A stretch of DNA of 64,000 nt from Macrostomum lignano (Eukaryota), in contig NIVC01001089.1 in assembly GCA_002269645.1 (NCBI GenBank), positions 62,001 through 126,000 of the forward strand, read 5' to 3'. Below are positions 9,696-59,900 of this stretch, one piece after another (positions within the stretch are counted from its first letter, which is position 1; each line of letters starts with the position of its first letter). Both the position numbers and the translations under genes were made by a program. The notes under the pieces are model-generated. The model worked only from the letters and a program-made list of their open reading frames with translations, did not search any database and was not told the origin of the DNA.

Positions 9696-10005
9696 AAAAA
9701 ATATTTTTTAGACTTTTGTCTTTCTGTTAATGGGGGCTATTTATGATTGAATTGTCTATGGTCGAAACGGGACTTTCAGTTAATGACCAGATATTAATTA
9801 AGCAGAGGTCATTATCGTGACGTGACATTTCAATTAATGCAAGCGTATTTCCGTAGGCTAAAGATACTCCATCGTTCTGATTAGAGAGTTGAACCGCAAA
9901 GACATTTTTTAAGAATTACTCAAACTTAGTGTTGTTGCTGTTGATGTTGTTCTTTTCTTGTTGTCGTCAACGTTAATATACCGTAATGCTAACCATTTGA
10001 ACCCA

Positions 10006-10815
10006 GTCTATGGTTAGTGTTGTCTATGGTTAGTGTTGTCTATGGTTAGTGTTGTCTATGATTAGTGTTGTCTATGGTTGCGTTGTCTAAGGTTTGTGTT
10101 GTCTATGATTAGTGTTGTCTATGGTTGTGTTGTCTATGGTTTGTGTTGTCTATGGTTTGTGTTGTCTAAGGTTTGTGTTGTCTATGGTTTGTGTTGTCTA
10201 TGGTTTGTGTTGTCTAAGGTTTGTGTTGTCTATGGTTTGTGTTGTCTATGGTTAGTGTTGTCTATGGTTAGTGTTGTCTATGGTTAGTGTTGTCTATGGT
10301 TTGTGTTGTCTATGGTTTGTGTTGTCTATGGTTTGTGTTGTCTATGGTTAGTGTTGTCTATGGTTAGTGTTGTCTATGGTTAGTGTTGTCTATGGTTAGT
10401 GTTGTCTAAGGTTTGTGTTGTCTAAGGTTAGTGTTGTCTATGGTTAGTGTTGTCTAAGGTTTGTGTTGTCTATGGTTAGTGTTGTCTAAGGTTTGTGTTG
10501 TCTATGGTTAGTGTTGTCTAAGGTTTGTGTTGTCTATGGTTAGTGTTGTCTAAGGTTTGTGTTGTCTATGGTTAGTGTTGTCTATGGTTTGTGTTGTCTA
10601 TGGTTAGTGTTGTCTAAGGTTTGTGTTGTCTATGGTTAGTGTTGTCTAAGGTTTGTGTTGTCTATGGTTAGTTTTGTCTATGGTTTGTATTGTCTATGGT
10701 TTGTATTGTCTATGGTTTGTATTGTCTAAGGTTTGTGTTGTCTATGGTTAGTGTTGTCTATGGTTTGTGTTGTCCATGGTTTGTATTGTCTAAGGTTTGT
10801 GTTGTCTCTGGTTTG
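10006..10815. repeat. Minisatellite, 16-bp unit TGTTGTCTATGGTT(A/T)G
   Basis: Read directly, about 50 copies; contains GTCTATGG. Confidence 0.95.
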
Positions 10816-56900: not shown

Positions 56901-59900
56901 TTTGAAGTTAAAGCCCGAGAAGAAACAAACTAATCTCTATCACTTTCATATGCTCAAAACTTCCAAACCAAGCCGTTCAAGTTGTGACGTTAAGCGGTGG
57001 AAGAGACTGATAAGACGTTTTTCAACGATTTAAAACTTGAGAATATGCAGCTTTGATGTGTAATTCGAGGTTACATCCTTGCATTCACATTTATGACCCC
57101 AAGATCAACCTGCAGGTAAGCTGAAGTCAGGTAAAAATCGGCCAAACGATTCACAACTCACCTTAATAAACGCCGTACTCCGAGAGTTCTCGCTAGATGC
57201 AAACACCGATTTGTGCGAGAAGAATCGTCGCATAAATTTGTAGCCCCTGGCAACGCTCTGCGGCGTCGGCAGCAGATTGCAGGGCACCGGCAGCGTGCTG
57301 CCGTTGTCGATGTAGTTCAGCCACAGCTTGGTGCGCGCGAACTTCCACTCGACGTCGCATTCGCTCTGGTTTAAGTATTTACGAGTATATTGTAGACTGT
57401 TAGGAGCTTGGAATAAAATAATATACAGTATAAACACATACTAGGAGCCTAGAAAGCCGAATTAGCCCCGATGTGTAGCAGTGTCCAAAGTCTACTGCAA
57501 ACTACGAGGTAACTAATAACTATTAAGAGCATTGTCAAGGATACAAAAGTGTCGAAATATATATGCATCAATAGAGAAGGTTTTGATCATTGGACAGCAT
57601 CATCGCATGGAAATCGAAACGTTTCTTACGTTTCTTAATTTTTCAGTTAGACTTCAAACTATTCTTTTTGTAATGTTAGTTATTCGTTATTGGTTTTATC
57701 TTATTACAGTATACAAAATATTAATGCATAAAATCACTTTCTACATAAACTGAAATTGTTCAAAACAATATTAAATTTAGTTTAGTCAATTCAAAACATA
57801 TGCAATAATTTTATAACGATATTGCTGTCTTACCTGAATATCCTCAAATGAATGTGACATCATAGCGATGAGCATATTGATGAGCACAATAATGATGATC
57901 ACGTGATAGAACGCCATCAGCGTCATTCCAACTGTTTCCACAACCTCTGTGGACGAGTTGGTCTTGATCATGCCGTCCTTGTACTGGTACTGAGCGTCAT
58001 TTGGATTGCTGGCATCGTACGGATGCTTGATGGGCAGGGAGGCCAGCTGGAAATTGTTGAACATTGCCCAGAACAGGGTGAACAAGGTGTGAACAAGGCC
58101 TCGAACGGCTCCGTGGCCGGTTCCTCCACCGTGAACGTCTGATTGCCAACTTCCACGATTCGGGCGATGCGCTGCAAGCCGTAGTACCAGTACAGGTTGT
58201 GCATGCCGACCATGAAGGCAAGCAGCACCTTGATGTCCAGTTTTGATGAAGGATTTTGTTAGAGGAATAAATAGCATGTCTTTTGCACTACTCACTATAA
58301 GTAGCTTCAGCTATCTACGAGTAATATTTTATTGTATGATGAAATTAAGCATTGGGTACTGGGTGAGAAACCATATCATCAGACTGACTAAAAACTGTGA
58401 AGTATTCAAATGAAGTATAATACTCCGGTATTATACAAGATAAAATATTGAAATTTTTCGTGCGTTTAACTTCAGATTCTAAAAGCATTAATTCAGGTAC
58501 ATATGTTTAAATGCTACATGTAATGGTATATTTCCGCACTCTAGCGAGTGTGGAAATTGCAGTGTTGTTGGGTTCATTCTTGCACACAGTAAGAGTGGTA
58601 GGAAGCAGGGGTCAAGGGGACGCAGTCACCTTGCGGGGGTGTGGGGGCGGAGCCCCCACTAATTCGAGAGCATAGACATTTAAACCGAGACCAGTAATAC
58701 GAGACCATAGACACTTAAACTAAAGATAGAAGCACGAGCCCGAGTTTCGTCGAAAGTTTTATTTCGTCAGATTTCAAAAGGGTTGAGCCATAGACATATG
58801 CATTCCTGCACTGTCGGGAAATTTACTCGCTAATTAGAGCTTTCCCTCCATGCAAATAATCACCAATTATCCACCTCAGTCATCTAACCAATTTGAAATC
58901 GACATGGCTAGCATCATAGACCCAAATTTGTGCGCTCCATTAATTGATTTGAACTACGTCACCGTGAGTGGAGTTTCGACGGACGCTGTAGCCGTTCTGT
59001 CTACAGAAAGCAAATTCGAGCGAGAGAGTGAAGAAGTATTGGCACAGTCACTGGCGGTTATTGGCACCGACGAACAATTGGAGAAGCTACTGGCTACGGA
59101 GCCAGAGGCTTTATGTAACCTCGACGAGCTGGAGGAACTGGCTCAGCAGATGGAGAGAGAGAATGAGTCCACGTCAAGCGTCTCCAAGGAAGTGGCGATC
59201 ATGAAGAGGTTCACTACCTGGTTGACTGATAACAATCTACGCTTGGACTTCAAGGAGGCTACAGCAGAGGAGATAGCTAAGTACGTCCGTTATTTCTACG
59301 CAAACCAGCGAAAACCTGATGGCAGCTTTTATTCACCCAACACGATGGTTGGTATTCGAGCTGCTCTCTTTCGTTACCTTATGAAGTTACGTGGACTCAA
59401 CATCATTATTGATCCGACTTTCCACGCGGCTAATCTAATGATTAAGCATGTCTGCAACGCCTATCTGAAAAATGGAGGTCGAATCCGGCATTATGGAGCT
59501 ATCGAGTCTGACGACATGAACAAGTTGGCTGCCTACTTCGACAGGTCTGGTCCATTGCGTCTGCTTGATTTCAATGGCGTTTTTACCATAGACAGTTGCA
59601 TTCCGGCACGCGAACGAGTGCGGGAACGACATTCCTGCGCGCTGAACCCGACAACACTGAATAATTCCTGCACGGTCACGAGTGCGGGAATGACATCTGC
59701 ACTAGTGCACGATGTCCTTCACGCACGAGTGAACGTGAAGGAATAGGCTTTGTATCTATGGTCTAAGCTACCCAAAAGCACCCATTAAGTAGCAAATTTA
59801 AGTAAAATCCTTGGTTTTCACTGCTTCTGAGCTTCCATCTATGGCCAAAATCAACAGTTCCGACATCTTAAAAAAATTAAGCCGAACAGAACCTTTTGAA

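Follow-up and report, generated by a model that had tools for sequence, protein, structure and literature searches.

Why should a single octamer recur in six minisatellites of different unit lengths and again within a mobile element, all in one stretch of a genome? The question is raised by 64 kb of DNA from the flatworm Macrostomum lignano (assembly Mlig_3_7, GCA_002269645.1; contig NIVC01001089.1), hereafter called the window, in which the word CCATAGAC (GTCTATGG on the opposite strand) is found in six tandem arrays, at ten single sites and, through three of the latter, in a copy of a Crypton, a DNA transposon with a tyrosine recombinase gene. Of the M. lignano assembly, 15% consists of simple and tandem repeats (PMC5730564). 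The reading favored here, in which we place about half of our confidence, is that the octamer is a protein-binding core, subterminal in Cryptons and densely dispersed in the genome, which the minisatellites mostly inherited from their source segments.

Sample and Counting

Octamers were counted by exact word search on both strands and compared with 100 dinucleotide shuffles, and arrays were called by Tandem Repeats Finder (TRF) and then merged. Relatives of a recombinase-like open reading frame (ORF) of the window (58850-59746) were found by similarity search and by listing of cluster members, and about 21 kb was taken around each of 12 further relatives on 11 other contigs (L002-L013, where L005 is a duplicate of L004). 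The total sample is 313 kb on 12 contigs including the window, and its independent loci, all sampled around Crypton copies, amount to about 250 kb.

The Octamer Is an Abundant and Sharply Defined Motif

The window has 134 matches to the octamer, distributed over the six arrays and the ten single sites, while the shuffles have 1.48 +/- 1.23 and at most 5; the excess beyond chance claimed by the original prediction is thereby confirmed, and the ten single sites that it listed are all present at exactly the positions given there. Throughout the 313 kb the octamer is about 12-19-fold over-represented. Outside arrays it is the most over-represented complex 8-mer (70 versus 3.9 expected in 209 kb, and 89 versus 4.7 in a larger non-array set of 296 kb), and when both arrays and Crypton copies are removed, 55 octamers remain in 241 kb, that is 0.23/kb or about 12-fold above expectation. 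Their spread is very uneven, ranging from 0 to 15 sites per locus.

The word is also sharply bounded. Among its 24 one-mismatch neighbors, 21 occur at 0.4-2.0 times expectation, the exceptions being CTATAGAC (5.0 times), CCATAGTC (3.4 times) and CCATGGAC (2.4 times), and CCATAGA is followed by C in 55 of 77 cases (71%) against a maximal-order Markov expectation of 36. Common flank preferences from -7 to +8 are seen in 39 independent, mutually unrelated contexts outside Cryptons, and widen the octamer to G-n-T-T-T-G-G-CCATAGAC-A, about 13-16 bp. All eight bases matter, and the octamer is a genuine sequence motif of this genome; chance, base composition and a single diverged repeat family are therefore excluded as its source.

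The surroundings of the scattered octamers are unrelated and include hairpins and inverted-repeat elements. Inverted near-copies within 40 bp number 46 versus 25 +/- 8.5 for shuffled targets, which is a weak excess, and stems of at least 7 bp just downstream of scattered sites are found in 13% of cases versus 3.9% at random, a modest difference that comes mostly from one locus. An octamer lies within 400 bp of three of about ten called gene starts, always in sense orientation, but this is not significant. Several structures with the motif were encountered in the other loci. A perfect palindrome with 17-bp stems in L011 (1104-1155) has the motif in both arms, GGCCATAGACACGAGCG-tgcgta-CGCTCGTGTCTATGGCC. 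Foldback-type elements with inverted arms of 89-190 bp are present in L007 (8274-8870) and L002 (12435-12674; also L008, 6532-6754), and the inner arm ends abut the octamer on both sides in L007, while in L002 the octamer lies 8 bp into the loop.

The octamer is specific to this lineage, since 35 kb from distant Crypton relatives in metagenomes (L014-L025, a set without the contig of the relative P0004) contains none. Nor is it part of a known RNA gene or of the head of a short interspersed element, as the window has no tRNA gene and no Rfam family at gathering score. A literature search met the octamer word only inside primers, and the M. lignano genome paper mentions neither Cryptons nor such a motif (PMC5730564); no published account of the octamer or of Crypton cis-elements in M. 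lignano was found.

Cryptons of M. lignano and Their Cis-Elements

Two full-length relatives of the window ORF, P0002 (506 aa) and P0003 (501 aa), match PF00589 (5.6e-8 and 5.7e-7, respectively), and their alignment keeps the tyrosine-recombinase positions RGRE, K, HxxR, GH and Y (R..K..HxxR..H..Y). A DUF3504 domain (PF12012), N-terminal to the catalytic domain, is detected in P0002 above the cut-off (8.5e-10) and in P0003 below it (24.4 bits, cut-off 29.7). Judged by these protein features, both elements are assigned to Cryptons of the DUF3504 lineage. Family A is 2.07 kb and family B 1.91 kb long, each with one ORF. Terminal inverted repeats (TIRs) and long direct repeats are lacking in both, and the only repeated parts are imperfect modules about 40 bp in length. 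Family A was found at nine loci and family B at three (99.2% identity), with unrelated flanks; five full-length family A copies that were compared are 98.5-99.6% identical over about 2 kb and likewise lie in unrelated surroundings. These families have been active recently in M. lignano.

The ends of the elements were defined as the points where similarity between copies with different flanks stops. The window copy was examined together with 12 independent insertions, of which nine belong to family A and three to family B, and both ends were readable in nine of the 12 and in the window copy. Family A begins (A)ATG/TAATATTCCTGCACGnnnACGAGTGCG... (the slash marks the boundary; the left end is also written TAATATTCCTGCAC or TAATATTCC) and terminates ...GGTCAAACGACAATG/, that is ...GACAATG/, and the ends of family B are ATG/TTAGGATTCTTGAAC... 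on the left and ...AAGAATG/ on the right. The last letters of the left flanks read ...(A)ATG, ...ATTG or ...CTG, and those of the right ends ...CAATG, ...GAATG or ...CACTG. Those nine insertions and the window copy have 2-6 bp, mostly 3-4 bp, of microhomology with the target, and the targets have only (A)ATG in common. Short direct repeats or microhomology at the ends are a published hallmark of Cryptons (PMC3212892, PMC13465315).

Within these ends three octamers stand in one direct orientation, two of them in the 5′ non-coding part and one in the 3′ part. The first 5′ octamer is at +72 from the left end in both families, the second at +117 in family A and at +182 in family B, and the 3′ octamer at -73 from the right end in both. 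The ORF-proximal 5′ octamer and the 3′ octamer each sit 5-6 bp upstream of a 10-bp arm, ATTCCTGCAC, of which family B has the variants AATCTTGCAC or AATTCTGCAC, and this gap is 3 bp in a fourth subfamily. Further copies of this candidate recombinase arm begin 4 bp from the left end and lie at 59 and 29 bp from the right end, and the arm builds 10-8-10 and perfect 10-6-10 inverted repeats, a geometry bound by tyrosine recombinases. The layout of octamers and arms is alike in family A, family B and the window copy. These three families are 54-61% identical in protein, and their arms and intervening DNA differ while the octamer is unchanged, indicating that it is a constrained cis-element. The part of the original prediction that ties the octamer to the recombinase element is supported, the octamer being a structural feature of a tyrosine-recombinase (Crypton) element.

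The window copy (58526..59659, plus strand), recognized from its ends and by alignment to relatives, is an internally deleted, non-autonomous Crypton of a third family, with the ends ATG/GTATATTTCCGCAC... and ...CCCGACAACACTG. Three of the ten single octamers, at 58705, 58788 and 59586, lie inside it, and the two 7/8 matches that had been placed near 58672 and about 59755 were located at 58670-58677 (GCATAGAC) and 59754-59761 (ATCTATGG). In its 5′ region, two tandem 35-bp units (58656..58725, plus strand), one with GCATAGAC at 58670 and the other with CCATAGAC at 58705, are a two-copy tandem duplication of a motif-bearing segment within the element. They are followed by the 5′ module (58770..58811, plus strand), which consists of a T-rich flank, the octamer at 58788, 6 bp and the arm ATTCCTGCAC at 58802. 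The truncated recombinase ORF (58904..59564, plus strand; 61% identity to residues 1-229 of P0002) retains only the first ~238 of ~506 codons and has no catalytic domain, and its open frame extends to 59746 across non-homologous DNA; a match to QRICH1 is weak (18.3 bits, below the cut-off of 30.8). The 3′ part (59567..59659, plus strand) has the octamer at 59586, 6 bp, the arm ATTCCGGCAC and the right terminus, and includes a 10-8-10 hairpin with this arm (59600-59627) and a further arm at 59631. An 88-bp left-end fragment of another Crypton subfamily (59660..59747, plus strand) is joined head-to-tail to this terminus, at CACTG/AATAATTCCTGCACGGTCACGAG.

Head-to-tail junctions between a right end and a left end were found both here (59659/59660) and in L008 (11860/11861), and are those expected of a circle or of integration into the site of another element. 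End fragments of several Crypton subfamilies are nested side by side in L004 (9497-9900; also in the duplicate L005), where a CAATG resembling a right end has been joined to a CATTG site that is internal and precedes an octamer of family A by 8 bp. It appears that Cryptons recombine into one another's ends. A recurrent GC hairpin, GTGGGGGC-n3/4-GCCCCCAC, lies a few bases from octamers in the Crypton 5′ regions of the window (58640-58657) and of L006 and L010 (~9930-9960), and occurs also in L011 at 990-1015 and 12455-12480, which suggests further non-autonomous Crypton-like modules.

Motif density is raised around Crypton insertions, being 1.03/kb within 500 bp of Crypton ends and about 0.14-0.27/kb beyond 2 kb, and an exact or 7/8 motif lies within 50 bp of five of the 12 independent insertions, where about one is expected. 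This excess is owed in part to nested Crypton fragments, and the remainder suggests integration near existing sites.

Minisatellites with the Octamer

TRF gives 38 merged arrays covering 15.2 kb of the window, and recovers all six motif-bearing arrays of the original prediction with the periods reported there. The first (10006..10823, minus strand; plus-strand unit GTCTATGGTTWGTGTT) has 51 units of 16 bp, 34 of them with the exact octamer, and 25% of its units carry GTCTAAGG in a 32-bp higher-order pattern. A second 16-bp minisatellite (11633..12248, minus strand) is its more diverged kin with 17 exact octamers. The 47-bp minisatellite at 13.2 kb (13236..13908, minus strand) has the exact octamer in seven of about 14 units, where it overlaps the palindrome ATGGCC-A-GGCCAT. 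All 15 units of the 40-bp minisatellite at 21.6 kb (21614-22230, plus strand) have the exact octamer, and older 44-bp variant units surround this array, reaching to 21592 on one side and to 22319 on the other.

The 42-bp array at 40.9 kb (40888..41044, plus strand) has 3.7 units, each composed of the octamer, 6 bp, an inverted 7/8 copy (GTCTGTGG) and the palindrome CCCCGGGG. It grew within an interspersed repeat of which L003 and L002 each have a single copy, and these copies already start with a motif-like word, GTCTRTGGYC...CCCCGGGG. Its unit has a module of about 26 bp (CCATAGACT...GCGTCTGTG) in common with a 50-bp array in L002 (20800-21587), which is the only motif-bearing array found outside the window. 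The 15-bp array at 43.2 kb (43250..43945, plus strand) must be very young, as its 46 units are 100% identical, and both of its edges lie inside or at the octamer. AACTTT brackets this array between 43238 and 43960 (…GTAACTTT/ATAGACC… and …CCATAGAC/AACTTTCGG…), and the pair has the look of microhomology, or of a target duplication of 6 bp, on either side of a block that was inserted or that expanded.

The units had been described as otherwise unrelated apart from the 10.0/11.7-kb pair. This is nearly correct, but the units agree over more than 8 bp (R-CCATAGAC-A, often GGCCATAGACA), and the 13.2- and 21.6-kb units have 12 bp in common. The flanks of the motif-bearing arrays are mutually unrelated. 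CCATAGAC is the 8-mer common to the largest number of independent arrays, tied only by the low-complexity word CTCCTCTC, and the words ranked above it in array sharing come from one repeat inside Crypton copies. Crypton arm words (ATTCCTGCAC-like, CACGAGTG) cluster in the window only at 58.5-59.7 kb, none being near the motif arrays.

The seven single octamers outside the Crypton were located by exact search at 9754..9761 (minus strand), which is 245 bp before the 10.0-kb array, 12567..12574 (plus), 40743..40750 (plus; 134 bp inside the start of a called PDZ/DUF4749 gene model), 42696..42703 (minus), 44010..44017 (minus; 64 bp from the last unit of the 43.2-kb array, to which it stands inverted), 51152..51159 (plus) and 56204..56211 (plus).

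Do the Arrays Depend on the Motif?

The number of arrays with the motif was compared with that expected from the density of the octamer in non-array DNA. The window has six such arrays among 38, with 0.2 expected (P ~9e-8), while the ten independent loci have one among 102, with 0.58 expected (P 0.44), so that the proposal of local duplications starting at the motif finds no support there. Pooled, the figures are seven of 140 and 0.79 (P ~2e-5), but this excess rests on a window that was flagged for this very feature. Relative to base composition alone the pooled arrays have seven versus 0.06, and non-array DNA is likewise enriched.

Within arrays the core is conserved no better than the remainder of the unit; in the 13.2-kb array half of the units have a mutated core, with 54% variation at one core position, and arrays with one-mismatch cores occur at the chance rate (4 versus 2.4 expected). 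Units with broken cores have multiplied, and an array can therefore grow without an intact core in each unit, which makes it less likely that expansion is driven by recombination at every core.

Some duplication edges do fall at the motif. A mini-array in L011 (8850-8896) ends at a motif (8891-8898), duplicated segments at 15114 and 15190 of the same locus begin at the motif, and the two 190-bp inverted arms in L007 stop 3 bp past it. For units of 15-47 bp, however, chance alone would bring an array edge close to the motif in 30-90% of cases, and this coincidence is uninformative because the units are so short.

Interpretation and Alternatives

According to the reading preferred here, the octamer would be the invariant core of a binding site for one sequence-specific DNA-binding protein of M. 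lignano. Since the octamer stays identical while recombinases and arms diverge, we lean toward a host factor rather than the recombinase as the putative binder. In a circular or head-to-tail form of the Crypton, the three octamers and the arms would surround the junction, by analogy with the accessory sites around the core of phage attP. The minisatellites would be ordinary arrays that slippage or unequal exchange built up from short stretches of DNA in which one site was already present, and they would seem unrelated save for the core because their source sequences have only the protein-binding core in common. The arrays are inferred to be passive carriers of the motif, in keeping with the motif-bearing two-unit duplication inside the window Crypton and with the growth of the 40.9-kb array in an interspersed repeat with a motif-like word.

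Five points weigh against this account. The arrays of the window are about 30-fold enriched for the motif over its non-array density, and passive inheritance fails to explain this unless the region is unusual. The independent sample that shows no excess comprises only about 250 kb and was drawn around Crypton copies. Of the 55 scattered sites, 49 have no Crypton arm word nearby that would point to their origin (six have one within 100 bp, the random rate being 6.8%). It is unusual, too, for a transcription-factor site to be so sharp and to have so few one-mismatch relatives. Finally, the only detectable DNA-binding domain in the Crypton protein is that of the recombinase itself, a Pfam scan of residues 1-212 of P0002 having given no additional one, and the binder of the octamer is a putative one.

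The foremost alternative, clearly less probable than passive inheritance though deserving serious attention, is that the motif actively seeds tandem duplication through fork stalling by a bound protein or through breakage by a nuclease or recombinase and subsequent repair, and also tethers Crypton integration; template switching or unequal sister exchange would then make arrays in which every unit has the site. The six motif-bearing arrays among 38 in the window speak for it, as do the start and stop of the youngest array, at 43.2 kb, in or at the octamer, the mini-array end, duplicated segments and inverted arms at the motif in L011 and L007, the raised motif density near Crypton ends and the proximity of five of 12 insertions to a motif. 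The independent loci, however, show no excess of motif-bearing arrays, units with broken cores have multiplied (those with GTCTAAGG in the 10.0-kb array and the variable core position at 13.2 kb), short units put edges near the motif by chance, and nested Crypton fragments explain some of the enrichment around Cryptons. A wider version, in which one factor, either of the host or encoded by the Crypton, is needed for recombination at Crypton ends, tethers insertions and seeds tandem duplications, is conceivable but rather improbable.

Descent of all motif arrays from one ancestral satellite, or from an internal repeat of one transposon family, is less probable again. The 10.0- and 11.7-kb arrays do form one family, and about 26 bp are common to the 40.9-kb and L002 units and 12 bp to the 13.2- and 21.6-kb units. 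Only 10.0/11.7 kb and 40.9 kb/L002 are related pairs, however; beyond the pairs just named nothing is common outside -2..+9 around the core, the periods are 15, 16, 40, 42, 47 and 50 bp, the array flanks are unrelated, no arm words lie near the arrays, and the 39 single sites have unrelated flanks.

A recombination-hotspot core, as in human minisatellites with a PRDM9-related core, had been offered as another explanation. For such a meiotic core, whether PRDM9-like or chi-like, only the formal analogy of one core in unrelated minisatellites can be adduced. Hotspot motifs tend to erode, and this idea fits poorly with an exact word enriched 12-19-fold. Moreover, the octamer is a conserved, oriented part of the non-coding ends of a transposon, and the excess in arrays is lacking in the independent loci; we regard this explanation as very unlikely.

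Even less credence is given to a Crypton terminus or insertion target, a reading that takes up the earlier inference of a TE terminus or recombinase site and would make the octamer an att-like core and its scattered copies empty targets or footprints. Every copy has the octamer in direct orientation on both sides of the recombinase ORF, and some Crypton groups elsewhere have TATGG termini, a word within GTCTATGG (PMC3212892). Against this, the mapped ends are ATG/TAATATTCC... and ...GACAATG/, with the octamers internal, at 72-182 bp from the left end and 73 bp from the right; the targets have (A)ATG alone in common; and the flanking modules are similar but not identical, and are therefore not target duplications. 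The octamer is neither the terminus of the element nor its target. A chance or compositional effect, or an assembly or adapter artefact, can practically be dismissed, since none of the 100 shuffles reaches six matches, the excess is seen on 12 contigs, outside arrays and relative to a maximal-order Markov expectation, and the octamer matches no sequencing adapter known to us.

Comparison with Known Systems

The closest described phenomenon is the conserved box of root-knot nematode satellites. In Meloidogyne, a CENP-B box-like motif is kept among satellite repeats that are 32-74% similar or unrelated (Mestrovic et al. 2013, PMC3694981; Despot-Slade et al. 2022, PMC9673304), much as one short motif is kept here among divergent repeats, and it has been proposed to promote rearrangement by a transposition-related mechanism or by illegitimate recombination (PMC3694981; PMC9673304). 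The present case differs in that the repeats are short minisatellites in gene-rich DNA and not satellite blocks, and in that the octamer lies mostly outside arrays and is tied to a tyrosine-recombinase element and not to a pogo-like transposase. By inspection, the octamer context GnTTTGGCCATAGACA does not align with the 17-bp CENP-B box, YTTCGTTGGAARCGGGA.

DNA transposons have repeated protein-binding motifs in subterminal positions, and phage attP has arm-type and accessory sites, as for lambda Int and IHF. These are the closest structural analogy. Several oriented octamers are likewise found about 70-180 bp from both Crypton ends, two of the three stand at a fixed distance from recombinase-type arms, and the motif is conserved amid divergence. 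Unlike such sites, the octamer, a putative binding site, is hugely abundant away from the elements.

Among Cryptons, the M. lignano families resemble the CryptonA type in their single ORF with DUF3504 and tyrosine-recombinase domains (Kojima and Jurka 2011, PMC3212892; Krysinska et al. 2026, PMC13465315), and known Cryptons in general in the absence of TIRs and long terminal repeats (LTRs), in the microhomology at the ends and in near-identical copies at different loci. Those two accounts mention no cis-elements beyond terminal direct repeats of 4-6 bp (PMC3212892, PMC13465315). The flatworm families differ from known Cryptons in their subterminal octamers, 10-bp arms, hairpins and head-to-tail junctions, and the window copy differs from autonomous Cryptons in lacking the catalytic half.

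Sap1 of fission yeast, a host protein that binds LTRs, is a barrier to forks, stimulates recombination and steers Tf1 integration (PMC5368702). As with Sap1, one short site would be present in a mobile element and at many genomic places, insertions tend to lie nearby, and local rearrangement may be linked to the site; the likeness is one of logic only, with no homologue and another class of element. Bivalve satellite-like arrays borne by miniature inverted-repeat transposable elements or Helentrons arise in interspersed elements and spread with them (PMC7492417; PMC5139131). The 40.9-kb array inside an interspersed repeat is comparable, but the motif arrays as a whole do not belong to one element family and have only the core in common.

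The core of human minisatellites described by Jeffreys is chi-like and G-rich, and the PRDM9 motif is a 13-mer. A core of about 10 bp common to unrelated minisatellites is shared with the former, whereas the octamer differs from both in that it is not G-rich, is enriched and not eroding, lies within a transposon and shows no array excess in independent loci.

Other Features of the Window

A second shared core was observed among the remaining arrays. Two 35-bp arrays, at 26155-26370 and 28976-29412, are related to each other, and an unrelated 47-bp array (28109-28540) has GGGGTGGGTG in common with both; exact copies of this word number 13 in the window. Among the complex 8-mers of the sample, the palindrome TACATGTA ranks second in over-representation (47 versus 2.1 expected), with a very patchy distribution of 0-12 per locus. 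It is found in the window at 25110, 35052, 58515 and 60236, and one copy precedes the left end of the window Crypton by 3 bp. Three families of interspersed repeats of about 270-350 bp, none of them with the octamer, are represented at 1047-1356, 27225-27488 and 55711-56003, at 49782-50132, and at 9357-9627, and occur also in up to seven other loci. A 14-bp array at 63555-63726 (TTAGGGTTGAAGGG) includes the telomere-type hexamer TTAGGG and is internal to the contig.

As for genes, an intronless, single-exon PP2C phosphatase gene is located at 36969-38315 (minus strand), and the range of the PDZ/DUF4749 gene (40609-48007, plus strand) includes the 40.9- and 43.2-kb arrays. An ion-channel ORF (57786-58295, minus strand) adjoins the Crypton; its Pfam match to Ion_trans is sub-threshold only, and its likeness to a TRP-type pore was judged by eye. 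A kinase-like exon (26631-27182, minus strand), resembling CDK by eye, runs into a TC microsatellite.

Implications

Of all classes of eukaryotic DNA transposons, that of the Cryptons is the least understood, and M. lignano offers recent Crypton copies with exact ends, candidate arms, an invariant octamer and head-to-tail junctions. Transgenesis works in this animal (PMC5730564), and transposition and binding are therefore directly testable in it (TTTTGACCATAGACAAAG is an octamer-bearing test sequence and TTTTGACCATAGACAAAGTCATTCCTGCACGG combines octamer and arm). An exact 8-mer that recurs every ~4-5 kb of the DNA sampled needs a cause, whether an abundant binding factor or a productive sequence-generating process. 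If the motif promotes tandem duplication, it would provide an experimentally tractable case of minisatellite birth. If, moreover, one factor serves recombination at Crypton ends, tethers insertions and seeds tandem duplication, part of the unusually heavy load of minisatellites in M. lignano would be driven by one interaction of a protein with DNA.

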